64,000 nt of DNA from NCBI GenBank assembly GCA_002104945.1, contig MCFH01000008.1, positions 620,001-684,000 of the forward strand, given 5' to 3'. Below, in pieces: positions 27-24,800 of this stretch (the first letter of the stretch is position 1; each line of letters opens with the position of its first letter). The stretch is from Piromyces finnis finn (lineage: Eukaryota; Fungi; Neocallimastigomycota). The notes beneath the pieces were generated by a model, which worked only from the letters and a program-made list of their open reading frames with translations, had not been told where the DNA came from and did not search any database. A program made the position numbers and the translations under genes.

Positions 27-3000
27 ATAAGGAATGCTGTTCAACCTTACTTCATTTCTGTAGTTATGTTCAAGTAAATATTAACTTTAGTCATTATATA
101 AAATATTGAAGGTTATTGAGAAAATAGAAAAAATATTTATATAATTATATAAATCGATATTATAATATTATAGTGGGTTCCAAATAGTGATGTTGTTGTA
201 GCTCAAAGTAGAAATAATTTATGTATTTGGTATTCAATTGATTCACCAGATCGTGTTACAATGTTTCCTATTAAAGTAAATATTAACTTAAATATAATCA
301 GACTTAATATACATTGATAAAAAAGGGAAATAATATTTAAAATATAAATTATAATAATATTTTATATTTTTAGGGTGAAATTGAAGATATTGAACGTATT
401 AATGGAAAGACAGAAGTTATTGTTGATGAAGGTGTAAATACAGTTTCTTACACTTTAGATGAAGGTTTAATTGAATTTGGAACAGCAATTGACGATTATG
501 ATTATGAAAGGTGACAATAAATTTTAAATTTTTAATTAATCTTTTTTTAAATTAATAAAATTATCGATATATTTTATTAAATAATAAAACATAATGAAAA
601 ATAAAAAACTTTAAATAATTTAATTAATAACAATAATAAATAAAAATAGAGCAATAAGCATTTTAGAGAAATTAGAGATTACAACAGAAACTGAAGCAAT
701 GTGGAAAACATTAGGTCAAATAACTTTAAAGAATAGAAACTTATTAATTGCAGAAAGGTAGTAGTAGTAGTATATATTATATATTATTTTTGTATATTTT
801 TATTTATTAAAAGGAAGAAAAAAACTAATTGAATGTAATAATAATATGAATAGATGTTATGCGGCTTTAGGTGATGTTTCAAAGGTTAGATACCTAAGAA
901 AACTTAATGAAATTGCTCAAAGTAAAAAGAATGAGGTAAATAAATTGTATTATTAATTCAATAATGTTATTTATCTTGTGAATAATTAATTATAATTGTA
1001 TTATTATTATATAATGATGATAATATTGTTAATGATAATTTTAATAGCAACATGATGGAACGGATTACTATTTAGTTAGAGCTAAATTAGCTGTATTAGA
1101 TAAGCAATTCAAACTTGCTGAAAATATTTATTTAGATCAAGTAAATAATTAACATAAAAAGATTTATATATTATTATATATTTATATTATCTATAATAAT
1201 TTATTAACTGTAATAATAATAAAAATTAAAGAATCGTGTCGAAGAAGCAATGCAAATGTATCAAGAGATGCATCAATGGGATAAATCTATTAAAGTTGCT
1301 GAAATTAAAAATCATCCAGAATTAACTACACTTAAAAAGAATTACTTTAGATGGTTAATTGATTCAGGACAAGAAGAAAAAGCTGGTGAACTCAAAGAAG
1401 AAGATTGTGATTATGTTGGTGCTGTTTCATTATATTTAAAAGGAGGTAAATTGTATAATTTAGCATTTTATTCATAATTTAATATTTATATATAATTTAA
1501 TATTTATACACATAATTTATATTTTAATAAAATCGTAATTAATACATATATTTAAAACTTTCATATTATAATATTAAGGTATGCCTGGAAGAGCATCCTA
1601 TATATTAAAACAACAAGGTTTAACGTCTAATACAGAGTTAACTGAAAGAGTTGCTGCTGCTTTATTCAATTCTGGATTATATGAAAAGGTGATATGAGTA
1701 TAAAATTATTTTTATTAATACAATCTGTTATCTAATGATTTTTTATTTGAATAATTAATTGCAATAAATAATAGGCTGGTGAATTATATGAGAAATTAGG
1801 TAATAATGAAAGAGCATTTAATGCATACAGAAAAGGAAAAGCATTTAGAGCTGCTGTTGAAATTAGTAGAACTGCTTTCCCACAAGAAGTTATTAATTTA
1901 GAAGAACAATGGGGAGACTATTTAGTTTCAATTAAACAGGTTGAAGCTGCAATTAATCATTATATTGAAGCTGGCCAATCTATCAAGGCTATGGAAGCTG
2001 CAATTAATTCTAAACAAGTAAGTATTACTACAGAAATATTATTGGGATAACTTTATATAATTCCCTATATAATATATATATATAAAGATTATTAATTATT
2101 CCTATATTATTTTTTTAATATATAAAAATGATATATAGTGGAAAAAAGCATCTGGAATTGTTGATTCGTTAGAATTAAATGAAAATACCAAGAAATATTG
2201 TGTTATCTTAGCGGAGCATTTTGAAAAAATTAATGATTTGGAATTAGCTGAAAAATACTATGTACAAGGTGGTAAGCCACAAAGAGCTGTTGATATGTAT
2301 ACTAAAGCAAATAAATGGGAAATGGCTCATTCATTAGCAACTTCATTTATGACTCCCGAAGCTGTTAATGAATTATACATTTCACAAGCAAGAGAAATGG
2401 AGATGAAAGGTATTAATAAATTCAAAGTTATTTATATATAACATATAGTAAATAATATAAATATTGATATTTTTTGTTTTTGTAAATAGGTAAGCTTAAG
2501 GATGCCGAAAAGTTATATATTACTGTTAATCAGCCAGATATTGCTATTAATATGTACAAGAAGAATAAACAATATGATCAAATGATTAGACTTGTCACAG
2601 CATATCATAAAGATTTATTATCTGAAACTCATTTATACCTTGCTAAAACGTTAGAATCAGAAGGTAACTTTAAGATGGCTGAACATCATTATCTAGAAGA
2701 GAATGATTGGAAATCTGTCATTAATATGTATTGTGCTAATAATATGTATGAAGAAGCATATAGAGTAAGTTGCGAATAATAAGTTAAAATAATATTTCCT
2801 TTCTTATATTGCAATAAATATCAAATGAAGTTACTTATTTTAATTATTCTATTTTCCTTATCATAATAGATTGGAAAGACCTATGGTGGTCCAAATTCTG
2901 CTAAGCAAGTGGCTTACCTATGGGCTAGATCTCTTAGTCCAGAATCAGCAGTTAAATTATTAAACAAATTTGGATTATTAGACGCTGCTATTGACTTTGC

Positions 3001-5419
3001 CACCGATAATGGCGCTTTTGAATTTGCTTTTGAATTAGGTAGATTTACTGATAAAGATAAGATTTCTGATATTCATTTCAAACATGCCTTATACTTGGAA
3101 GATGTAGGTAAATATGATGAAGCTGAAAGTAAATTCATTATGGCAGGTAAGCCAAGAGAAGCAATTTTAATGTATATTCATAATGAAAATTGGGATGCTG
3201 CTATTCGTGTAGCTGAAACTTATGATTCAAAGAGTGTTCCAGAAGTATTAATTGGACAAGCTAAATTAACATTTGAAAAAAAAGATTACAATAAAGCTGA
3301 ATCTTTATTATTACGTGCTCAACGTCCAGATTTAGCAATAAAATTCTATAAGGATGCTGGTATGTGGGAAGAGGCATTAAAGTTTACTAAAGAATATCTT
3401 CCAAATAAATTGGCTGATATTAATGAAGAATATAACAACTTTATTGTTAATAAAGGTAATTCTGGAATTAATAATTTACTTCATTCTGCAAGAATGCTTG
3501 AACAACAAAAGAATTATTCAGGAGCTATTGATATATATTTAAAGATTAATGAATCTCTTACTAAGAACAAAGATATCTTACATGCAGCTTGGAGTAAGGC
3601 AGTAGAATTATCTGCTAAATTTGTTTCTCAAAGAGAAATCGAAGTAGTTAATACTGTTGGTACACGTTTAATTCAAGATAGACAATATGATCAAGCTGCT
3701 CAACTCTATATTAGCATACGCATGTATAAGGAAGCAATTGATGCTTATATTATTGGAAAGATGTGGAATAAAGCCAAAGAAATTACAAATATAGCTCCAA
3801 GTTACAAAGATTATGTAGATAATGCCTATGTTAGCCAACTGAAGAATGATGGACAAGCAGATGAACTTGTATCTATTGATGTATCTGCAGGATTAAATAT
3901 GTATATTAAAAATGGAGACTGGGATAAATGTTTAGAAACTTCAAGTGGATATGTATGAATATATGGTTTACTATATTAAAAATGAGTATATAATAATATT
4001 AAAATAAAATCTAAAATATATTAAAAATTAATTATTATTTAAAATAGGGAAAAGAAGTATTAAATAAATATTTAATTCAATATTGTGAAACCTTAATCAA
4101 ATCTCAAAGTTATGATAAAGCAGTTAAGAGTATTATAAAGTACAATGTTCCAAATTTCAAATCTAACTATGATTTGTATTTAGTTATTGCAAGAGAAATA
4201 CTAAAATCTACTAATGTTTCTATTGAAACATATTCAATGTTACGTGAAATGCTATATAAATTGGTATAAAATTATCTCAATATAATATAATATATAAAAA
4301 AAAACAACAGTAATAATAATATAAATATTATTTATATTTCATAATATTATAATCTGTACTAGATATTAATGGAAGGATCCGATCCAAATAATAGTTTACC
4401 ATCTACATTTATTACATATATGTTTATTGTTCATTTAATAACATTAAAGAGTTATTGTTCTAGTAAGAAAGATTTACAAACATTTGCTGCTAAACAATCT
4501 ATCTCATTATTACGTTACACTAATTACATTCCAGTTGATTATGCATTCTATAATGCAGGAAAACTATCTAAGGTTAGTTAATTTATTATAAAAAACAAAT
4601 AGGTTCTAATAGTAATAATAATAATTTTAATTAATTTTTTTTATTTTTTAAAATTAATAGTTATGTGGTATGAATAGTATGGCTTTTGTTACATGGAATA
4701 GATTTTTGGATATTACAGAAGCTATTGATGAAGGAAGTAAATATATTAATGAAAATACTGATTTCCAAAATACCGATGTGCCATTTGATGTTAAATTACC
4801 ATCAGAAAATATGCCTGTATGAATGAATTTTATTTAATGAATTTTATTTCTTCTATAAAATATTTTATATAATATTTTATTATATTAATTTATATTAATT
4901 ATAATATTGTATATATACTTATATATATCAGGAACAGGAAAGAGAAGCTGTTAGAGATTGGATCCTTCAAGTTTCTCTTGACCAAAAGGTTAATCAAGAA
5001 ATTGATAAAAGATTATGTGATGAATGTAACGCAGAAATATATAGTGCAGCATTAGAGTGCTATAATTGTCATGCAAAATATGAACCTTGTATTATAACAG
5101 GTAATTAAATATATAAAAAATGGAATAATTAAAGTAAATTTAATTTTTGTTATTATGTAATATATTTACTATTTATTTATCGTAAAAAGGTTATCCTGTT
5201 TTAAAGAATAAAATCCAATGCAGTCAATGTAAAAAGTCAGCAAATAGAGATGATTGGAATAAATTCATTATGTCTGAGAAGGTATATACTTTATCAAATA
5301 TTTAGTTATTAAAAAATTATGAGTGAATTTTGTTATTAAATGTTTATTATTTGATTAAATTCATATAGGCATGTCCATGGTGTGGAACAAGTCAAAACCC
5401 AATATATTCTTTGAAATGA
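27..5419 (+). CDS. IFT172: Intraflagellar transport protein 172 (3' part, many exons; 5' end outside window)
   Basis: Spliced exons give TPR/alpha-solenoid sequence ([31 protein letters not shown]...[24 protein letters not shown]). A C-terminal Cys-rich region (CDEC...CYNC...CIITG...CSQC...CPWC) ends at TGA 5417-5419. GT-AG introns throughout. Confidence 0.93.
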
Positions 5420-8422: not shown

Positions 8423-8566
8423 AAGTAATTATTTATAAAAATATAATATATATTTTCCAAAAAAAAAAAAAAAAAAACAATATATTTTGTGAAATTTTAT
8501 TAATTAATTTGTATTTTTTTTCTTTTTAAATGTATTTGTATATATAAAGTATACTAATAAATAATA

Positions 8567-11500
8567 ATGTATACAGCATGCAATGATTTATTAAACTCAC
8601 CTTTACGTACTTCAACTGGAAGTTCATTATCATTTTCAAATGTCACATTTTTACTAAATTCAATACCGGAATCTATAGTAATAATATCTGAAAAAGGATT
8701 AATTCTTGAATTAAATTCGGCAACTTCAAGATTATTTGGTTGGACAAAAGATGAAATTGTAAGTTCTTTTTTAATTTTTAATATAATATATTTATTGTAG
8801 ATAATTATAATAATGCATAAGTTTTGAAATATCAAATTATATTAATATGATTTTGTCTATATAGATAAATAGAAAAAACATTAGTTTTTTATTAACTAAT
8901 AGAGATGGTGAGAAATTAATGAATATAATTAATAATGAGGAATTATCATCATATGTTGAATCATGTTTTCATTATCATGGTTTAAATAAAAATGGATCGA
9001 CATTTCCATGTGATATAAGTCTTGGACTTTTTCCAAAATCCTTATTAGAAACTTCGTCAGTATCATCATCTTTATCTATTAAAATGTATTCTAATAATGC
9101 CATAGTAGTTGTTATAAACACAAATAAAAAAGTATATCGTTCAAGTGATTCAGTTTTATTAGATTTGAAATCAAGATATCAAAATGAATATGAAGAAATC
9201 AAAACACTTGGAAAAGGCGGTTTTGGTCAAGTATATAAGGCCAGAAATCGTCTTGATGGTCAGTTATATGCAATAAAAAAAATAAAACTACAGAGTAAAC
9301 CTAAAGAATTTAGTAGTAATTTTGATTTACAAGGCATTGTAAATCCTAAATCATTTAATTCTCAAAATACTACTTCAACAACCACATCTAATCTGTCTTT
9401 TCTTTCAGAAGAAGATTTAAGAATTGTTCGTGAAGTAAAAACATTCGCAAGAATTTCTAATCATCCAAATATTGTAAGATATCATGCTTCTTGGATTGAA
9501 GTTGAAGAAAAAAGATCTAAGAAGGATAAAAATAATTCTAATGGTGATGACGATAGTTTAGATAGTTCATGTGATGAGGATGATGAAATTGATGAAAGTT
9601 ATAATAATATTGAAAAAAATTTAGAAAATAGCTATTCTTACTCAAATAATAGTAGTGTTAGTAATAATGTAAACTTCCATAGCCATGGAAGTAGTCTAAG
9701 TGATGAATCTAGACAACAAACTTCAAATGATTTTATTATATCTTTTGTTGATACACAAAATAGAAATAATACCAATATTAATAATGATAGCAATAATAAC
9801 ATAAGTGAAAGGATTAATAATAGTTCTAACGAATATTTTATTAATATGAATGATTTAGATTCTTTACATAGTAATGATAGTAAAAGTAGTGGAAGTGATG
9901 AAAGTGATGAAAGTGATGACTCCACAAATATTAATAGTTCTAAAGAAAATTCTTATACTCCATTTTCTTTCATATCTAATGAGGATAATTCAAAATCTTA
10001 TGAACATATACGTCTTAATTCATTGCAAATCCAAAAAAATAGAAAAAAGAAATTAAGTTTAGATCCAATTAACACTTCAGTTATTAAACCACAGGAAAAG
10101 AAAAATAATTTGATGCTTTATTTAATTATTCAAATGGAACTTTGCTCAGGTCAAACTTTAGAAACGTGGATTCATGAACGTAATAAATTGACAGAAAAGA
10201 AAGAAATTCACGTGGATAGAAAAGTTATTTTTAAGATTTTTAAACAAATCGTTCAAGCAATTGCTCATGTTCATTGGAATGGCTGCATCCATCGCGATGT
10301 AAAACCAGCAAATGTATTTTTACAAGATGATAATCATATTCTATTAGGTGATTTTGGTCTTGCAAAAGATGTTGATCTTAACGTTAACTCACCTAAAACT
10401 GAAACAATACCATTTTCAACAACATTAGTTGATAATGAAGATGAATATGAGCTTTCGTCCGAAATATTAAAAGAACTTAAGGATAATGAAACTGAAATAA
10501 CATCAGCTCAAGTTTCAAAATTTCACAAATTAACTTCTGGTGTAGGTACATACATATATGCATCTCCAGAACAATTAGCTTCATCTCAAGGATATGATAA
10601 TAAAACTGATATTTATTCTCTTGGAATTTTATTATTTGAATTACTATGGCCGTTTAAAACTGGTATGGAACGAATAAAGACTTTAACCAATATTAGAGAT
10701 GGTAAGTTTCCAGATAATTTTGTTGAAAAATGGCCATTGGAACTACCATTTTTAAAAAGTTTATTAAATCCGGATCCAGCATTACGCCCAACGGCACAAG
10801 AGATTTTAGACTCTGAAGTCTTAAACATTAATTATATTACGCCTTTATATAGTAATCCCACAAATTTATTAAATGCTCTTGATCTACGTGTAACTCGTAT
10901 TTCACTTGATCCAAATGAAAGTTTAGTAATAACTGGAAGAGGTAAATCTAAAGAAAGAAAAGGTCATAATAAAACCTTATCAACCACATCCAAAATAATT
11001 AAAAATTATAGTGATTGTGGTGCATGTAAACAAAAGGATTTAGCCATCAATTCATTTAAAAGTCAATTTGTTAAAACTAAGGATACCATAATTAAATTGG
11101 AAGGTAAATATAACATTATTTAATCTTGTAACTTGTAATATTCTAATTATAATCATGTATTTTTTAAAATATTATATATTGTATTGATTTTCAATTTTTT
11201 AATAATAATAAATCCTTCTTTCATAGATTCTGTTGCCAAAGCCTCAAGACGTGTTTGGGTAGTTTCTATAATTACTTTTTTTATTGGCAGTATTCTTACA
11301 TTAGGCATAACTTCTTTTATTACTAACAGAAATAGTGGATCTTTATTCGACACTTCATCAATCCGATCTACTGATATACCTATTAATATGAAAGCTAGTT
11401 TGCATAGTAGTTTAGATATAAATGACAAGTATAATTTAGCTCACGCATCAGAAATACAAGAAATACCTGTAATAAATGAAGTTCCAGTTATTCAAGAAAT

Positions 11501-11789
11501 ACAAGATGATCATGCTCAAATTGATAAATCTAATTTTATATCAAAAAAAAGTAAATTTAATAAGGAAAAAATCGAAATCAATGATGAAAAATTAAATAAA
11601 AGGTTAGGAAAAGAGAATAGTTATAAATCAAACAATAATAAAGTTAAAAGCAAAGATTTTACTGTAACTCAAACATTTTCTATTAATTATTTTTATCAAA
11701 GTAAAACAATTACTGTTACTAGAACAAAAACAAGAGTAATTACTTATAGTACTAGTACGCAATCAGATATTTCAATTCCAACAATTTAG
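8567..11789 (+). CDS. PAS-domain eIF2-alpha (HRI/PEK-family) kinase with C-terminal coiled coil and transmembrane helix, ~997 aa, 3 exons (8567-8758, 8865-11103, 11227-11789)
   Basis: Exon 1 and the start of exon 2 give a PAS signature (LLNSIPESIVIISEKGLILELNSATSRLFGWTKDEIINRKNISFLL...GLNKNGSTFPCDIS). Kinase motifs: GKGGFG, YAIKKI, HPNIVRYH, a long acidic/Ser/Asn insert, IQMELC, IHRDVKPANVF, LGDFGLA, TSGVGTYIYASPEQ, YDNKTDIYSLG. Both introns are phase-compatible. Exon 3 has the hydrophobic stretch VWVVSIITFFIGSILTLGITSFIT. Confidence 0.85.
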
Positions 11790-12068
11790 ATTTACTCAAT
11801 AACAATTAAAAAATAAAATATAATAACCCAAAAAAATATTAGTAATAATAATAAAAATTAAAATAACAATATCAAATTTAATTGAAAAATATCTTCCCAT
11901 AAATAAACTATTAAAAAAACTTGGTTTATTCTTTTAATTTTAATATAATTCTTATTATACTAAAATTAAAAATCATATCTAGTAATATTTTCACAATTTA
12001 TTATTAGTTACAAAAAAATAAAAAAGAATAAGATCAAACCAATAACAGCAACAAAGCAACAACAATAA

Positions 12069-13279: not shown

Positions 13280-16200
13280 ATGAATTGTTGTTGTTTATTC
13301 AAGAAAAAAAGTAAAAAAAATATATCGACAGAATATTTAGATTCTGTAAATTCACGTGTAAATGTTCTATCAACAAGTGAACTCAATTGTTCAAAAGATG
13401 AAAATCCAACAGGTAAATAGTAAATAATTATTTATTCAAAGACCAAATATATTTATTAATTAAATAAATCATCATATTATATCAAAAAAAAAAAAAAAAA
13501 AAAGATATTCAAAAGGAAATTCCTGCTATAATTGATATCGCAAGCATTAATGAAAGAGCAACTAAGCAAAAATGGAATGTCTCATCAAAGGTCAGTTTTT
13601 GAGATATATATTATATGTCATGATATTATGATATTTTTATTTAATTTTACTAAGATAGTAACGATTATATTTTATTATTATTATTAAAAATAGTTCGATT
13701 TATTATGCTTAGACAGAATTCTAAGTCCATTAAAGGAATATTCATTAAATGTTGAGTTACCACCAAAAACATTAAGTATAGAAAATGTTTATGGTAAGGC
13801 ATTGGAATTTATAATAAATTAAAATATTTTATGTAATAATAATAACATTATTACATATATTTTAATATTGATGAATATATTTTATTTTCATTTAAAAAGG
13901 GTATCAAGGAATATATGCAAGAAAAAATCTATATTATCCAATGGATTCACCAAGTGCTCAACCTATTATATATTTTTCAGGAAAATTAGGTATTTTGTCT
14001 TATTTTTCACTTAAAATTCAAGTGTTTTATACAGGCCACAATAGACCAATTACATGTATGGCAATTCATCCTGATAGTAAAATATGTGCAACTGGAGAAT
14101 ATGGATCTGGCCCATCAATTCATATATGGAATATTCCATATATTGAAAGAGCTGATAGTAGAGATTATGAAACGAACATTGTAAAACCATTGTTTATATT
14201 AAATTTAGACAAAAGATTTATACAAACAGTTTGTATATCATTTTCAAGATGTGGTAATTGGTTAATTGTTATTGCTTTAAATCAATCTTATATTTCTGAA
14301 GTAAATAAAAAAAAATAATTTTAGTCATTATATAATAATAAAAATAATAATTAATTGATTAAGAGTAATACGCTAATAATATATATTAAAAAATATTATA
14401 CTATAGATTTTATGTTATGATTGGAAAAAAGGAAAAGAAGTTAGCTGTCAACTTTGTCATGATGATAAAGTAAAATCATATATAATGAATAATTATAAAG
14501 ATAAATTATCAACTTATTATTAATGGTATTATTATGTATTTTAAATAATTTTATTAAATTATATTTAGGTATTCAATCTTATTGTAAATCCATTTTCAAG
14601 AAGAGAATTTGTAACTCTTGGAGTAAAACATATTAGATTTTGGTCTATAGACAATTTAATTCATCCTGTAGATAACTCCGAAAAGAATCAAAACCTCACA
14701 GTTGTAATTTTTATTTTTATATAAAAGCATTAAAATATTATTATAAATACTAATTTTAATTACCAAATTTTATTATTATTTAGTCACATATTAGTGGAGC
14801 TTATTTAAAATCAAAAACATTCGCATCAGGGACAATCAAAGGGGATGTTTATTTCTGGAAAAATTGTTTATTGAGTGTCGTTTGTAATAACGTTCATAAA
14901 GTATGCTTTATTTTTTATTTATTCATTATTAATATATAAATTATATATTAATTATTTTAAAATTATTTTAAACATACAAATTATTAAATTAAAAAAAAAA
15001 AACATCACCAATAATAAAACAATAAATTATACATTTAAACATAATATAAAATAATAATGTATCCGATAACAGGGTCCAGTAACTGTAGTATCACCATTAC
15101 CAAATAATAATTTTTTAACAGGTGGTCGTGATGGTAGAATTGTATATTGGAATGAACAACATCAACCCATAAATGAATATACTTTCGATAATAATTCATG
15201 TATTCGTTCTATCGACGCTGGTGGTTTAGAAGGTATATTATGGGGCTGGGGAGATGGTATTGGTAGAAGAGCTAGTAGATCATTTAAAGGACTTAATGGT
15301 GGTTTTAAAAATAGAGCTTCTGTCTGTTCAAATTCATTTTTACAAGAACTTACGAGATCAAATTCATTATTGACTGTTTCTAGTAATACTTATAGTGTAA
15401 ATGTTAATAACATTTCCAATAATCTTGAAATATTGTCAAATGATGAGCCTGTAGATGAACAAAAAATGGCCGATATTTCATATATTGTTGGATGTGAAGA
15501 TTCCAGTATGTATATATTTTCTCAAACAGATAAGGAACCAATAAGATTAACCGAAGTAAATTATAATCTAATATTATTAAAAAAAGTAAAAATGATAATT
15601 TTTCATATTGAATTATATAATATATATAACTTTATTATAAAAAGGGTTCTTATTGTAGTTCTGATGGATATGAATTATGGGGTTTAGATACTCATCCATT
15701 AAATTCAAATATATTTATTACAGCTGGTGATGATGGTTTTATTAAAGTTTATAATTTAGAAAAAAAAGAACTTGTATGTTAATTATTTTAATATTTTTTA
15801 TATTGCTGAATAAATATTAATTAACAATATTATATATAAATAATAATTATAAAATTAATAAAATAGATAAGAAAAAAAAATTATGGTATAAGACTTCGTT
15901 CTATATGTTATAATCCATCTGGAATAAATATAGCTGTAGGAACAAACGATGGAAGTGTAAGTATTACTTATTACTTAAATATTAAATATAATTATAAAAA
16001 ATTATTTAAAAAGTAATAATTTTTTATTAACAAACATATAATATTTGTTATATTTTAATAGTTCTTCATTGTTAATGAAAATCTTGATATTATAATAAGT
16101 GCAATAATCGATAGAAGAGCTACTATTTATGATTTAGCGTATTCGCCAAATGGTAAATACTTAGCAGTAGCTAGTCATGATAATTATATTGATATATATG

Positions 16201-18895: not shown

Positions 18896-21800
18896 ATGGA
18901 TCGGTATAAGACATTACAAGTTCTTGGTGATGGTTCATTTGGTGTTGTAGTAAAAGCAGAAAATTTAAAGACGGGAGAAATTGTAAAGACTTTTATTATT
19001 CTATTTTATATATAATAATAACATGATATTATCAACTCCTTATATTATGATAATATTTTTTTATATATTCATTATATCAACTTTCATTAAAAAATATTTT
19101 TATTAAAATAATATTTAAGGTTGCAATAAAACGTATGAAGAAAAAATTTTATTCATGGGAAGAATGCATACAATTAAGGGAAGTTAAGGTAAATATTGAA
19201 AAAGCTAGATACATTTTATTATGAAATACTTATTGAAGAATAATTAAATATCAACTAAGAAATATAAATATAAAACTGTTGTTTACGTGATTTTTAATAT
19301 AGTCACTGAAAAAGTTAAATAATAATCCAAATCTTGTTAAACTAAAAGAAGTAATACGTGAAAATGATGAATTATATTTTGTATTTGAATATATGGATGG
19401 AAATTTATACCAGTTTTTAAAAGAACAGGAAGGAAAATTATTACCAGAATTTGAAGTTAAAAAAATAATGTAAATAAAATATCAATTATAAATAAAGAAA
19501 AATCAATATTATTAATTAGTTGTTTAATAAATAAAAGGTTTCAAGTATTACAAGGTTTAGCACATATGCATAAGCATGGATTTTTCCATAGGGATATGAA
19601 GCCTGGTAAATATCCAAAAACAGCATTGAACAACAATAAAATTTAGATTTAAAAGTAAAACTAATATTTTATTTCATATTTTGAATAATATAGAGAATCT
19701 TCTTACTTCAGGTCCATTTGTAAAAATTGGTGATTTTGGTTTAGCAAGAGAAATTCGTAGTAGACCACCATACACTGAATATGTCAGTACGAGATGGTAA
19801 TAATAAGCGTGATATAAAAAATTTAAAAATATATAATTTTGCTTAAATAAATAAATTTATTAAAATAAAAAAATTATAATTATGAAAAAGGTATCGTGCT
19901 CCTGAAGTTCTTCTTCGTTCGACTTCATATTCGTCACCCATAGATATGTGGGCAATGGGTGCAATAGCGGCAGAGTTATTTACCTTAAGACCTTTATTCC
20001 CAGGGTCATCAGAAATGGATGAGTTATATAGAATATGCTCCGTAATAGGAACTCCAACAGATTCTTATTCTGGTAATCAAGGTTCGGGAGCCAATCAAAG
20101 TTTCGATACCCCATCTGATAATAATAGTGTTATATTAAGTGGTGGTGGTTCATGGCAAGAGGGAATACGATTAGCATCAGCTATGGGTTTTAAATTTCCT
20201 ACTATGGCACCCGTTCCTCTTAATAATTTAATACCAAATGCTTCTGTAGAAGCACTTCAATTAATATTAGACATGCTAAAATGGGATCCAAATTCACGAC
20301 CTACAGCTCAAGAATCACTACAATATCCTTGGTTCAGGGATATATGGTCAAATAGTGTGTTAAAAAATTCATTGCTTGCGGGTACTCTTAATAAAATTGA
20401 AACAACAAAGGAAAATACTGAAAGTAAAAAAAATGAATTAGAAATTGCAAAAACAGAAAATTTAGATAAGAAATTTCAAAAACTTAATAATTTATCTTCA
20501 ACTAGCAACAGTAATTCAAATAATACCTTATCTTCACCCACAGGTTCTTTTGATTTTGATATTGATGATGATGGTAATATAATAAAGAGTAAACATGGTA
20601 ATAAAAAGGACTATATGAATAATAATGAATCGTTATCTAATATAAATAATATGACCTTTTCAAGTCTTTATTCTCTAAATAATCAAAATAATGATGCTAC
20701 AGTTTCAACATTAAATTTTAATCGCAGTATGAGCTATACTAATATTTCACCAAAAACAAATGGAAATGAATTAAGCAGTAGAAGTAGTAGAAAGAGTTTA
20801 TTTAGAAGTGATAGTACTAAAAAAAATGATGATGAAAAGCTCTATTGTGGATCATCTACTAGTGTTATTAATCCATCGGATTCATTATTTAATACTAATA
20901 ATGAAAATTATGGAATAGAATCTACTACATATAAAAAAAAAGCTGAAAGCTCTCATGCATCCAAATCAAACTTTAATAATTATAACCATAGTAATCATAG
21001 TGATATTAGTAATAGTAATAATACTGTAAATGAAACAGAAGATAAAATAGACGATGAATTTAATAACAATACAAAACAAGAAAATGATAATTTATCATAT
21101 CGTAATACAATAAATCATAATTCCAATAATAATATAGCTGGAATAGGTATTAAAAATGTTAAAAGATACAACAGTCCAACAGAAGATAATAAAGGTTTAA
21201 GTTCCAGTTTTGGAAAGCTATCATTATCTGGAAGTATAAATAATGGAAACCATACATCTGAAAGCTTAATAAAAAATAAACTAAAACCAATGAATACTAC
21301 TAATTCTGAAACATCAAATGATCATTCATTAGAATCTAATTCGGATCACTCAAAAACTTCTTTAAATGGATTAAATTTTAATAGTGGCAGTAAATCTGTT
21401 AATTCAAATTCTGGAAATGTAGGAAAAATGAATCAATATTCCTCTAGTATTTATGCTCCTCCTCATTCATTGGTACCAAAGTCTCAAAACAATAGTTGTG
21501 ATAGTGTAAATAATCCAAATTTTTTAAATTATCAATCCTCTTTTAGTTCAAATAATATAAACCAACGTATTGGAACATCAAGTTCTGTAAATAGTTCTCG
21601 TCACTATAATAATAATCATCATGACCAATCTTTAACTTCCTTACCTATTAGTAGTAATAATAGTATAAATGGACACCATCAATCAATTCCATCCAGACCA
21701 TCAAAATATAAACAATTACCCGCTATTGATAATCAGTTAACTAATAAAAATTTTCTAAAGTCACCAGACATATCAATGAATAATATATTCCATGAAAATA

Positions 21801-24800
21801 TAGAACTAAATAAAGGATCTCATAAAAATCAACAGACATCGCCTAATTTAGAGAATACAAATTCTCAATTAAATTCCAGCAATAGTTTAAATATGCTTCA
21901 ACATTCAAACAAACTTAATTCTCTAACATATAATAGTCACAATGTATTTGAATCTGCTTCAAATGGCTCATTTTCAAATTCTAAATCATCTCATCCATCA
22001 TTATTGAAGCCATTACTAACCAATCAATCAAAATCAAATATAATAAATGATGGTATGAATTCACAGCAGTTTCAAAAACCTGTTAAATTAGAATCATTAA
22101 ATTCTTTTGAATTGAATAGTACGAGACGTCCATCAAGAGGTGAAGATTTTACTAAATTGTAATAAAATTTATTCTTTTATATACTATTTATTATTAAATA
22201 TTATATATTATTCTAATTTATTTTATTGCAATATTTATTATGAAGAATTATTAGAAATTGAAATAGTCATTTATATATCGATTTAAATATAATTATTAAT
22301 TATTAGAATTAAATATATTTATCATACTATAATTATATAAAAAAGATATTTTTAATTGGTTATTATAAAGAATGATATTTAATAGGACAGCATAATAGGC
22401 AGGCTATTTTTGTGTTAAAAATGAATTAGTATTAAATAAAATAATTTGATATAAAATTAATGGAAAATTAAAGAAATTATAAAATATTATTTAGTTTATA
22501 TATATATTAGATTAAAAATAGTTTTTTTTGTACGATATTATTAAATTAAAGCTTACATAGATTAAAATGATTTATAGTTTATATTTATATTATTTCATAT
22601 ATTATTTAATATTATCAACTTTTTAAAAAAAATTATAAATTTCATTTTATTATGAATTTTAAAAATTTGTTTTAATTAATTCTTTAATTTTATATCAAAT
22701 ATTAATTTATTTTTTATATATTAATAATATAGATACACCTATCAACATTCCAAATGAATTAGAAAGAAAATTATCCATTATCAAGCCAGTATTATTACCA
22801 AGTAATTCAAAATATAATGGTAGTTCATATGATGTAAATTCTCTTGATCGTAGTAACAGTAGGAATAGTATCACACTTAATACAAAATATCCTGTTCCAT
22901 TAGAACCTATTAATAAAACACCTTCACATTCTTCAATTAATAATGAGTCTTCTTATGTTGATAATTCTTATCTACCAGCAAGCCCAAAATTGCATACCTA
23001 TAGGTCACAGGGAGAAGACATTTTGAAGACTAGAAAAATATGTGTTGTAAATACTCCTAGTAACAACTTAATGAATATAATTGATAGTCACTCAAATAAT
23101 CTATCAATCAACTCCTTGAATCAAAAGGTAGGCAATAATGAAACATCTAGTTTAAGTAATAGCAATAGTAATACTGATAATAAAACAACTAAAAATAATA
23201 AAAAGTCTAAAAATAACAACAAAAATAAAAATATTAAAAGTAAAAATAACAAAAATGGCAATTCTAAAATATCTAAAACTACTACATATACAGCAAAGAA
23301 AAAGAAGTCACTACATCCAAAACAGACCGAGACTGGAGACACTACCAAAAAGTTATCATCATCTACTCTTTTAAAGCAGGAAAATAAAGCGTCTGAAAAA
23401 GAATCACCTTTTATTCAAAAAGAAGAAATTAAAACATTAAATATTTCCACAAAAAATGAGGAACCCATGATAGTAAAAACTCCTCAAGGAAATACCAATA
23501 TTAATAATCATAGTAATAATAATATAATTTTAAATGAAAATAATAATATTAATATAATTAATAAAACTAAAAGTATTGATACATTTGATAATAATGGCAA
23601 TAGTAATATTAAGAATAATGATAAAGATAAGAATAAGAATAATAGTAATATCACTACTTTAAAGAGTAATAGTAAAGAAAAGAATAATAAAAAACCAGAT
23701 AACATTGACAAGAAAAATAATACAAGTAATATTACAGAAAACTGTAATTCTATAACCAAAAAGAAAAAAGCACAAACAACTATTGGAAAAGGTAAAACAA
23801 CAACTAAATCAACAATCACTTCTTCAACAAAAAAAGATTCAAATAAAAAGGTTAATACTAATGGAAGTAATACCAAAAAACCTGAAAAACTTGATACATC
23901 AAAACAGGTAATAGATGTCAATGAAAATAAAATACAAAACATAGTACAAAATGATATGATTAGTAGTACATCAAATAAGTCATTAATAAATAATAGTGAA
24001 ATTAAAGAAAGTATAACAGTGGAAAATCAAACCATTAAAAATGACACTAATGAAAATTCATTACAATTAAATAATAAAAAACAAATCTCATTAACTAACA
24101 GTATATCTGAAAAGAAAACTATTCAATTCAATGTTGTTATTAATGATTCAATTAATATCACTTCAGAACCAACAACATCAACTACAACTAATATTAATAT
24201 TACTAGTAATAATAAAGATAATGATAATAAAAATTCCAATGCAGTAAAATCAAAGGATAATGAGAATTCGATCAATCTAAATCATATTAATACTACCGGA
24301 AAAGAAACCATTTCAACTATAACATCTCCACCACTCAAAAATACAAATAATAGAACTAAAAAACTTAAAAACACTTCAAATGTAGCTAATAATATTGGCT
24401 CTGAAGATAAATTAAAGGAGCGCAAAGATCAATCAAATAAAAAATCAAATATTGAACAAAGTAATTCAAATATACCTTCCAAGAAAAAAGAGAATGGGAA
24501 TTCTACTGATAACAAAAAATTGGAAGAACCAACAAGTAATAACAATAAATTACCTATACTATCAAATACCTCATCTAAGGCATCTACTTACTTGAAACCA
24601 AAAGCATCTCAATTGAACCCTCTGAATCAAACATCAATTCCTCCAACATCATCTATTTCACAACAATCAATACGCAATCAGAATATTCTTTCTACTGTAG
24701 ATTTTGGTACTAATTTCAATGACAATGTGAAACAGTCAATTTATAATCATGACCCAAAAGGAATATATCAAGGAACAAATAATCTTTTCAGTGATAGTGG

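Follow-up and report, generated by a model that had tools for sequence, protein, structure and literature searches.

Gene structure and domain layout of the locus

The gene described here lies on the forward strand of a 64,000-nt stretch of the Piromyces finnis genome (contig MCFH01000008.1, positions 620,001 to 684,000), which we refer to as the window and from whose first letter all positions are counted. It occupies positions 8567 to 11789 and consists of three exons encoding a PAS domain, a protein kinase domain of the eIF2-alpha kinase (PEK) type, a CxxC motif with a coiled coil, a transmembrane helix and a polar tail. A preliminary description of the locus had listed the same elements in the same order, and all of them are present on the forward strand. 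We consider it likely that the gene encodes an eIF2-alpha kinase that is tethered to a membrane and faces the cytosol, and that its PAS domain no longer binds haem in the canonical way. The features are as follows, where P0001 is the corresponding protein at NCBI, L002 is a contig that carries an orthologue, and L001 is the locus of a paralogue.

8567-8758 (+): exon 1, amino acids (aa) 1-64, with the start codon and the N-terminal half of the PAS domain; exon 1 alone matches Pfam PAS PF00989 with 28.6 bits (cut-off 22.6), agrees with P0001, and L002 748-964 aligns with 8557-8758
8639-9122 (+): PAS domain, aa ~25-150, split by intron 1; strands H and I are linked by a Ser-rich loop
8759-8864 (+): intron 1, GTAAGT...TATAG, phase 0, interrupting the PAS domain; no counterpart in L002 (964|965 corresponds to 8758|8865)
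8865-11103 (+): exon 2, aa 65-810, with the remainder of the PAS domain, the kinase with its inserts, and the CxxC motif and coiled coil; an open reading frame in the sequence, identical to P0001, with L002 965-3204 aligned with 8865-11089
8916-8918 (+): codon of Leu82, at the position of the proximal haem His of FixL in helix F-alpha
9168-9506 (+): kinase N-lobe, aa 166-278, with GKGGFG and Lys202 of 'YAIKKI'; 92% identity among orthologues
9507-10106 (+): kinase insert, aa 279-478 (200 aa), of low complexity and rich in N, S and D; 44% identity among orthologues
10107-10823 (+): kinase C-lobe, aa 479-717, with HRD Asp542, DFG Asp560, the activation-loop motif 'TSGVGTYIYASPEQL' and the alpha-G motif 'PFKTGMERIKTLTNIRDGKFP'
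11016-11103 (+): CxxC motif and start of the coiled coil, Cys782/Cys785 (aa 782-785) in 'DCGACKQKD', invariant in orthologues
11104-11226 (+): intron 2, GTAAAT...CATAG, phase 1; no counterpart in L002, and an intron at the same place in L001
11227-11789 (+): exon 3, aa 811-997 and stop codon, with the membrane anchor and the tail; L002 3219-3883 aligned with 11227-11846
11250-11318 (+): transmembrane helix, aa 819-841, with K/R/R on its N-terminal side; highest 19-residue Kyte-Doolittle value 2.29
11319-11786 (+): polar tail, aa 842-997 (156 aa)
11658-11732 (+): tail motif, aa 955-979, 'FTVTQTFSINYFYQSKTITVTRTKT', 68% identity

The kinase locus is a real three-exon gene, and both of its introns are confirmed by the orthologue contig. 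The product of the three exons comprises 997 aa and is 100% identical to the P. finnis 'kinase-like protein' P0001. The orthologue P0124 (1020 aa, 80% identity in the kinase exon) is encoded by a single uninterrupted open reading frame on contigs of the JGI (3.7-4.0 kb, from three samples), of which L002 comprises 3985 nt with the 1020-codon frame. Since both introns are lacking, we take these contigs to be assembled transcripts. L002 aligns with the window in three blocks that meet exactly at 8758|8865 and 11103|11227, and in-frame stops precede the ATG of the orthologue. Four runs of one organism, probably of RNA, contain 83-89% of the words sampled from positions 8500-11900, a proportion that fits a spliced transcript. 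We note that the leader of L002 (1-757) is 84% A+T and contains a single ATG, which opens an upstream reading frame of 8 codons, as compared to about 10 ATGs expected by a rough estimate from base composition. The scarcity of ATGs suggests selection against upstream starts. The window itself is extremely AT-rich, with 10-15% GC in intergenic sequence versus 22-32% within the kinase gene.

The three in-frame exons of the preliminary description thus agree with P0001, whereas the start of its exon 2, given as ~8904-8919, had to be moved to 8865. A start at ~8904/8919 lies ~40-55 nt too far downstream, and no acceptor of canonical form is in frame there. Splicing instead uses the AG at 8863-8864, by which exon 2 begins at 8865 and gains 'INRKNISFLLTNRDGEKL' within the PAS domain.

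The architecture had at first been taken to be uncharacterised. However, proteins of this kind have already been catalogued: the study of Swift et al. 2021 (Front Fungal Biol, PMC10512342) reports 'PERK-like' PAS-kinase-transmembrane proteins in anaerobic fungi, found by using PERK as search query, and leaves their function open. The authors checked their gene models against RNA-seq coverage. In their view, the architecture does not fit PERK; they also pointed out that the haem domains of HRI are missing, and suggested that the PAS domain might sense redox or oxidative stress. Their P. finnis entry, MycoCosm 367815, is very probably the same protein as P0001. Our search of the literature, with subscription journals outside its coverage, returned no FixL-type PAS domain on an eIF2-alpha kinase beyond this study.

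The kinase domain and its affinities within the PEK family

The kinase domain matches the Pfam Pkinase profile with 147 bits, in three stretches broken by the insert. The insert parts the profile positions up to ~70 from those from 72 onward. An insert at this site of the N-lobe (the beta4-beta5 region) is a hallmark of eIF2-alpha kinases. A second insert of ~50 aa is found in the activation segment (aa 567-618). The lobes are strongly conserved, with mean pairwise identities of 92-94% among five full-length orthologues, the set to which the mean pairwise identities given below also refer. The catalytic residues (the Gly-rich GKGGFG, Lys202, Asp542 and Asp560) are invariant in 10 orthologues and align to those of HRI and PERK. 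C-terminal of the kinase follows a conserved segment, 'NPTNLLNALDLRVTR', and then a variable linker.

Membership in the PEK family, as claimed from the outset, is well supported by comparison with solved structures as well as by phylogeny. The best score against the PDB is obtained with HRI (9rhh, 186 bits), followed by PERK (4x7h, 183 bits), GCN2 (160 bits) and PKR (132 bits); the first match outside the family is Nek2 with 78 bits. The top 19 distinct PDB sequences are exclusively HRI, PERK, GCN2 or PKR (121-186 bits), and in trees the protein is placed inside the PEK set, apart from non-PEK outgroups. The family signature is evident in the alignment of 'SRYQNEYEE..LGKGGFG..YAIKKI' with 'SRYLNEFEE..LGKGGYG..YAIKKI' of human HRI, and likewise in the HRD and DFG motifs. 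The activation-loop motif 'TSGVGTYIYASPEQL' aligns to 'TSRVGTCLYASPEQL' of HRI, and the alpha-G motif 'PFKTGMERIKTLTNIRDGKFP' aligns to 'PFGTEMERAEVLTGLRTGQLP' of HRI and to a 21-residue segment of PERK. Both the alpha-G pattern 'PF.T.MER..L..R...P' and the activation-loop pattern 'GT..Y.SPEQ' are intact and invariant among orthologues. In PKR, the alpha-G helix is the docking surface for eIF2-alpha.

Within the family, the preliminary description had favoured an HRI-type kinase, and the balance of evidence leans the same way. The N-lobe scores 47.6 bits against HRI (9rhh) versus 28.7 bits against PERK; the C-lobe slightly favours PERK, with 88 bits versus 73 bits for HRI. In a first protein search, most of the top named matches were eIF2AK1 of molluscs, nematodes and insects. 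A coiled coil that starts with 'KD.(E/L)I..LK' after the kinase is common to this family and to the metazoan HRIs inspected. For phylogenetic placement, the 150 best representatives of an exhaustive search were split into kinase units, because tandem-kinase PKR fusions had inflated the raw search ranking, and an 88-row tree was built. In this context we note that P0136, P0137, P0139, P0141, P0144 and P0146, which were among the top matches of this search, each combine two kinase domains with multiple double-stranded RNA-binding domains (dsRBDs), one of them also with a Z-alpha domain; they are either tandem PKR-like fusions or merged gene models.

The rows were labelled by their non-kinase domains in our own profile searches, which assigned 62 HRI N-termini, 23 PERK luminal domains, 16 GCN2 HisRS-like domains, 8 PKR dsRBDs and 39 PAS domains. 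The 62 HRI labels derive from jackhmmer with the N-terminus of a mollusc HRI, and none of the proteins so labelled also carries a PAS label. For the P. finnis protein, Pfam returned no match to an HRI N-terminal haem-binding region, the PAS domain being the sole match N-terminal of the kinase, and neither Pfam nor our own profile searches found similarity to a luminal domain of the PERK type.

In the 88-row tree, the PAS-bearing kinases form one group together with ten chytrid proteins in which no PAS domain was detected (support 98 in the Shimodaira-Hasegawa-like approximate likelihood ratio test, SH-aLRT). This group falls within an unresolved HRI-containing assemblage (SH-aLRT 89), apart from the clade of PERK and PKR (94) and from GCN2. 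Approximately unbiased (AU) tests on constrained trees, with fast searches, the simple model LG+F+G4 and our own domain labels, do not reject a grouping with HRI (p 0.37) and reject groupings with GCN2 (p 0.003) and PKR (p 0.006); a grouping with PERK is marginally rejected (p 0.043), in a test confounded by PERK-labelled rows that fall into two groups in the free tree. With moderate confidence, we regard the kinase as 'HRI-like' on its sequence, and 'PERK-like' would be the less apt label.

Among its relatives, the kinase clade has named members in Nowakowskiella, Polychytrium (two genes), Boothiomyces, Terramyces, Phlyctochytrium, Borealophlyctis and Rhizophlyctis. A member from Batrachochytrium dendrobatidis is annotated as 'eIF2-alpha kinase 3', and a PAS-bearing protein of Rigifila is placed just outside the clade. 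In NCBI, members from Boothiomyces and Terramyces (P0149 and its cluster) bear the name 'ornithine decarboxylase antizyme with +1 programmed ribosomal shift Spa1', which is evidently mis-transferred, because these proteins carry a PEK-type kinase domain. By these relationships, the gene would be one of two paralogues of anaerobic gut fungi within an HRI-like eIF2-alpha kinase subfamily that extends across zoosporic fungi. We refer to the other as paralogue B.

The PAS domain, its relatives and the genomic neighbourhood

The PAS domain is recognised in the full protein by two Pfam profiles, both above the cut-off (PAS PF00989 with 32.4 bits and PAS_9 with 30.1 bits, aa 29-118), and hence across exon 1 and the start of exon 2, where a PAS domain had been proposed. 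In the AlphaFold (AF2) model it has a confidence (predicted local distance difference test, pLDDT) of 80 and a complete five-stranded fold, with the Ser-rich H-I loop disordered. Its resemblance to FixL, at first an impression from a few residues, is borne out by sequence and by fold: the top matches in the PDB by phmmer are exclusively FixL (E=7e-7), and the top 14 by Foldseek are FixL haem domains with TM-scores of 0.6-0.73. Word-based searches with the PAS region alone returned few relatives (13 and 6 matches), and the nearest matches outside the family were bacterial PAS histidine kinases with ~29% identity. The core of the domain is well conserved, with a mean pairwise identity of 86%.

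The residues that hold haem in FixL are replaced. In the HMMER alignment to Bradyrhizobium japonicum FixL (BjFixL; 1dp6/1y28), the His of 'RHDSY' stands opposite the L of 'GEKLMN' (His200 to Leu82), in line with the preliminary description, which had seen no His at this position. Likewise, FixL 'IGIGRIVTG' stands opposite 'VESCFHYHG' of P. finnis, such that the distal Arg220 in strand G-beta corresponds to Phe99. By the established numbering, the aligned FixL segments hold the proximal His200 and the distal Arg220. In all copies from Neocallimastigomycota, of both paralogues, the His position is occupied by Leu or another non-ligand and the Arg position is aromatic. The ligands are likewise lost in Rhizophlyctis, Borealophlyctis and some others. 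For the cluster of FixL and DosP PAS domains, Xing et al. 2023 (PMC10468136) name the His in F-alpha as the residue on which haem binding primarily depends. Canonical haem binding is therefore unlikely, because both the proximal His and the distal Arg are replaced, and most likely, as judged from the alignment, the P. finnis PAS domain binds neither haem nor O2 in the manner of FixL.

Other potential ligands were considered as well. His100, His102, Cys98 and Cys113 are conserved within the orthogroup; in paralogue B, His100, His102 and Cys113 are not conserved. According to the FixL alignment, His100 and His102 would face away from the pocket, and the pocket-facing G-beta residues Tyr94, Phe99 and Tyr101 would fill the space of the haem. 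No Cys-Pro haem-regulatory motif exists in the protein, as P0001 does not contain a single 'CP' dipeptide.

Several relatives retain both the proximal His and the distal Arg, namely P0017, P0019, P0020, P0261 and P0037 of Rigifila ramosa. The PAS domain of P0017 matches BjFixL with E=4e-22 and ~50% identity, followed by the haem-PAS of DosP; its 'NHDRYMSEYR' aligns with 'RHDSYISRYR' of FixL and its 'IGVTRTLRGLRKDGGTFP' with 'IGIGRIVTGKRRDGTTFP', and the haem-type relatives carry 'GVTR'. In Polychytrium aggregatum (L006:3332-3856, JAHLKK010000003.1), a FixL-type PAS domain with 'NHDKYMSTY' and 'LGITR' is encoded by three exon-like stretches that lack annotation. They are located directly upstream of an annotated HRI-like kinase gene (P0140, 4001-6439). 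The model of that gene begins only with the kinase and is probably truncated at its 5' end. At the Nowakowskiella locus (L007), no PAS exon was found in the 4 kb preceding the kinase gene. Judged by sequence, fusions of a haem-type PAS domain with an HRI-like eIF2-alpha kinase appear to be carried by aerobic zoosporic fungi as well as by other protists; the intact haem signature is seen in Polychytrium aggregatum, in Rigifila and in several uncultured eukaryotes. The ancestral layout would have consisted of a FixL-type PAS domain, a PEK kinase with insert, and a CxxC motif with coiled coil, and the ancestral protein probably bound haem, because aerobic relatives keep the full FixL haem signature.

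These observations bear on the proposal, put forward in the preliminary description, of a switch from a ligand, O2 or haem to translation. The PAS domain would bind haem, porphyrin or O2 and switch the kinase, and haem or oxygen in the rumen would bring about translation arrest, for example at zoosporogenesis. Descent of the domain from FixL in sequence and fold, the complete haem signature of the aerobic relatives, the conservation of the core together with His100, His102, Cys98 and Cys113, and the HRI-like chassis (HRI being a haem-regulated kinase) are all in keeping with such a switch. So is the induction of zoospore release in rumen fungi by water-soluble haems and porphyrins, which had been invoked for this gene and is indeed stated in a review (PMC7609409). 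The proposal does not sit well, however, with the loss of the His200 and Arg220 equivalents from every orthologue and paralogue in Neocallimastigomycota, with a pocket that would be filled by aromatic side chains, with the poor conservation of the alternative ligands in paralogue B, or with the missing Cys-Pro motif. We regard it as unlikely. Its narrower form, in which the P. finnis domain would bind rumen haem or porphyrin through non-canonical ligands and thereby time translation in zoospores, we regard as distinctly improbable.

In its likeness to known systems, the PAS domain is close to FixL of rhizobia (PDB 1DRM, 1DP6, 1D06) and to DosP in sequence and fold. It differs from FixL by Leu82 and Phe99 in place of His and Arg and by the inserted Ser-rich H-I loop, and its output is a eukaryotic Ser/Thr kinase instead of a histidine kinase. 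An N-terminal PAS domain regulating a C-terminal Ser/Thr kinase is also known from PASK and yeast Psk1 and Psk2, and the PAS domain of PASK clusters near that of FixL (Xing et al. 2023). The kinase of the P. finnis protein, in contrast, belongs to the PEK group, and no PASK is found among its best 60 PDB matches.

The gene had also been described as lying between flagellar genes, which is true only in part. Upstream, the window contains a TPR region of the IFT172/IFT140 type (2909-3958, +). Downstream, a WD40/EML-like exon is located at 13941-14318 (+). We attach no functional weight to this arrangement. Further downstream, an open reading frame of 738 aa (19946-22162, +) agrees over its first 130 residues with the C-terminal portion of the Pkinase profile and probably represents the final exon of a separate protein kinase gene.

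Membrane anchor, proposed mechanism and significance

The C-terminal part of the protein combines conserved and variable segments. The CxxC motif and coiled coil show a mean pairwise identity of 75%, and the combination of CxxC-x-KD and coiled coil is found again in the paralogue, chytrid relatives and Rigifila. After their kinase domain, the metazoan HRIs that we inspected have a similar coiled coil, 'KD.EI..LK', and lack the CxxC. The helix at aa 819-841 is the sole hydrophobic helix of the protein; it occurs in all full-length orthologues (Kyte-Doolittle 2.3-2.7) with a mean pairwise identity of 66%. Swift et al. 2021 (PMC10512342) report the same C-terminal helix from TMHMM and no signal peptide from SignalP. 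The protein is thus predicted to be anchored in a membrane by a single helix near its C-terminus. The tail that follows is variable among orthologues (28% identity over most of its length), except for aa 951-980 (68%). It has no Pfam family and no N-glycosylation sequon, and in an Atlas search it returned weak mucin-like and viral glycoprotein look-alikes only (score 0.54, TM-score <0.33), which are no evidence of homology.

Exon 3 is a lineage-specific addition that carries the anchor and the tail. Most cleanly ending relatives outside Neocallimastigomycota stop 30-40 aa after the CxxC, without a transmembrane helix. This end point coincides exactly with the boundary of exons 2 and 3, for which reason we regard exon 3 as an added membrane module. 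The module is not confined to this gene. P0134, an orthologue of paralogue B, has a classic tail anchor at its C-terminus ('...KKILIYNILTVLTCVILTILYHIFFTN'), and the P. finnis paralogue locus (L001:7497-7850, MCFH01000020.1) contains a homologous anchor exon, 'ESLYKANRKLFYYNIFVVFTFITLLILLQFITLNK*', which follows an intron at the same position as intron 2 of the window. An anchor unique to the present paralogue is thereby ruled out. In NCBI, the last exon of the paralogue is mis-called: the model, P0018 (1268 aa), has a spurious 'VIH*' end in place of the anchor exon. Because both paralogues share the anchor exon at the same intron position, it predates their duplication in anaerobic fungi. Paralogue B has only ~8-10 residues beyond the helix, such that the feature common to both paralogues would be the anchor and not a luminal domain.

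The anchor invites comparison with PERK, and it has been suggested in print that the protein is a PERK-like sensor of unfolded proteins, in which the part beyond the membrane senses stress of the endoplasmic reticulum (ER) and activates the cytosolic kinase. Such a sensor would explain the transmembrane helix and the nearly equal scores of the kinase against PERK and HRI (183 vs 186 bits), and it was with PERK as query that Swift et al. 2021 found these proteins. Yet the protein has neither a signal peptide nor a luminal domain of the IRE1/PERK type, its extracytosolic part would be a 156-aa tail of low complexity and low conservation without a Pfam family, and the near-absence of such a part in paralogue B points to a shared anchor rather than a shared luminal sensor. 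Grouping with PERK was marginally rejected, as described above. Moreover, the supplement of Swift et al. 2021 (PMC10512342) reports no differential regulation of the A. robustus and N. californiae genes after heat shock. Taken together, these points make luminal sensing very unlikely.

Compared with the PERK protein (EIF2AK3) itself, the likeness extends to a PEK kinase with insert in a membrane protein. PERK is of type I, with a signal peptide, a luminal IRE1-like sensor, a transmembrane helix and a cytosolic kinase. In the P. finnis protein, the predicted order is instead a cytosolic PAS domain, the kinase, the helix and a short disordered tail, with no luminal domain; this arrangement, the reverse of PERK, was anticipated in the preliminary description. 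HRI (EIF2AK1 of metazoa; Hri1 and Hri2 of S. pombe) is the closer counterpart, with the best-scoring solved kinase and with likeness in the N-lobe, the insert, the activation loop, alpha-G and the coiled coil. The P. finnis protein differs from HRI in that the N-terminal haem region is replaced by the PAS domain, the Cys-Pro motif is missing, a CxxC precedes the coiled coil and a membrane anchor is present; HRI is soluble. Membrane-bound eIF2-alpha kinases also occur in protists, such as eIF2K2 of Trypanosoma. Both eIF2K2 and TgIF2K-A of Toxoplasma have an N-terminal extracytosolic domain followed by a transmembrane helix, a topology like that of PERK. Neither of them is known to have a PAS domain or a C-terminal anchor. 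TgIF2K-A is cited by Swift et al. 2021 (PMC10512342) as a membrane-attached eIF2-alpha kinase outside animals.

Based on these results, we propose the following mode of action for the membrane-tethered, cytosol-facing kinase. The protein would be inserted with its N-terminus inside, leaving the PAS and kinase domains in the cytosol; this orientation is suggested because positive charges precede the helix and because the substrate eIF2-alpha is cytosolic. Dimers may form via the coiled coil and CxxC motif, with a zinc or disulfide bridge as a possibility, and via the PAS domain. An activating signal would lead to autophosphorylation at Thr621/Thr626 of the activation loop, and the kinase would then phosphorylate Ser51 of eIF2-alpha, resulting in less ternary complex and lower general translation. 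The PAS domain would probably have a role in regulation or dimerisation or else sense another signal, with thiol/redox sensing through the conserved CxxC motif as one candidate input. The anchor would localise the kinase, and luminal sensing as in PERK is not expected. As to the input, a non-haem ligand, redox or a protein partner is most likely; haem or porphyrin bound in a non-canonical way has a low probability, and sensing by the tail a very low one.

Some points weigh against this interpretation. Since its core is so strongly conserved, the PAS domain must still do something, which argues for retained sensing of some input. The loss of His and Arg may be compatible with non-canonical binding of haem or porphyrin, given the conserved His100, His102, Cys98 and Cys113. 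When the tree is rebuilt without four long branches, the 26-row PAS clade is kept and its support drops from 98 to 38; the 12-row subclade that includes the anaerobic fungi is supported at 98-99 in both builds. The affinity to HRI versus PERK is not robustly settled, as the deep nodes are open and the AU test was a fast one.

A kinase with a substrate other than eIF2-alpha, nearer to PASK/Psk or another signalling kinase and with its PEK features as ancestral leftovers, is the least probable of the alternatives: the family is divergent with very large inserts, and the layout of an N-terminal PAS domain and a C-terminal kinase superficially resembles PASK, but the eIF2-alpha-docking alpha-G motif and the activation-loop motif are intact and invariant among orthologues, and the top PDB matches are all eIF2-alpha kinases, more than 50 bits above any other kinase.

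Beyond the membrane-tethered eIF2-alpha kinase as such, we tentatively suggest, as one possible history, that the gene, haem-blind and with its product tethered to a membrane, descends from a class of sensors not described so far that join a FixL-type haem-PAS domain to an HRI-like kinase. In this class, O2, NO, CO or haem would gate translation initiation, and the gut fungi would have lost the site and re-purposed the PAS domain.

Relative to the accessible text of Swift et al. 2021 (PMC10512342), the leaning towards HRI and the FixL-type PAS domain with its ligands lost are new, as are the aerobic chytrids and Rigifila with ligands kept and the lineage-specific transmembrane exon shared by a second paralogue. 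The gene is less novel than first thought, because the architecture was catalogued in 2021.

The integrated stress response is entered through eIF2-alpha kinases, for which textbooks list four types of sensor. The family described here adds a fifth, namely a PAS domain of bacterial type on an HRI-like chassis, found across zoosporic fungi. Within the family, the P. finnis gene resembles a naturally occurring 'ligand-loss' variant that can be compared with its haem-type relatives in aerobic chytrids. The comparison poses the question of whether a FixL-type gas or haem sensor can drive translation control in a eukaryote, and of which input has replaced it in an obligate anaerobe. Finally, the findings correct the label of a 'PERK-like' protein or extra branch of the unfolded protein response, which is relevant to the engineering of anaerobic fungi for protein secretion.

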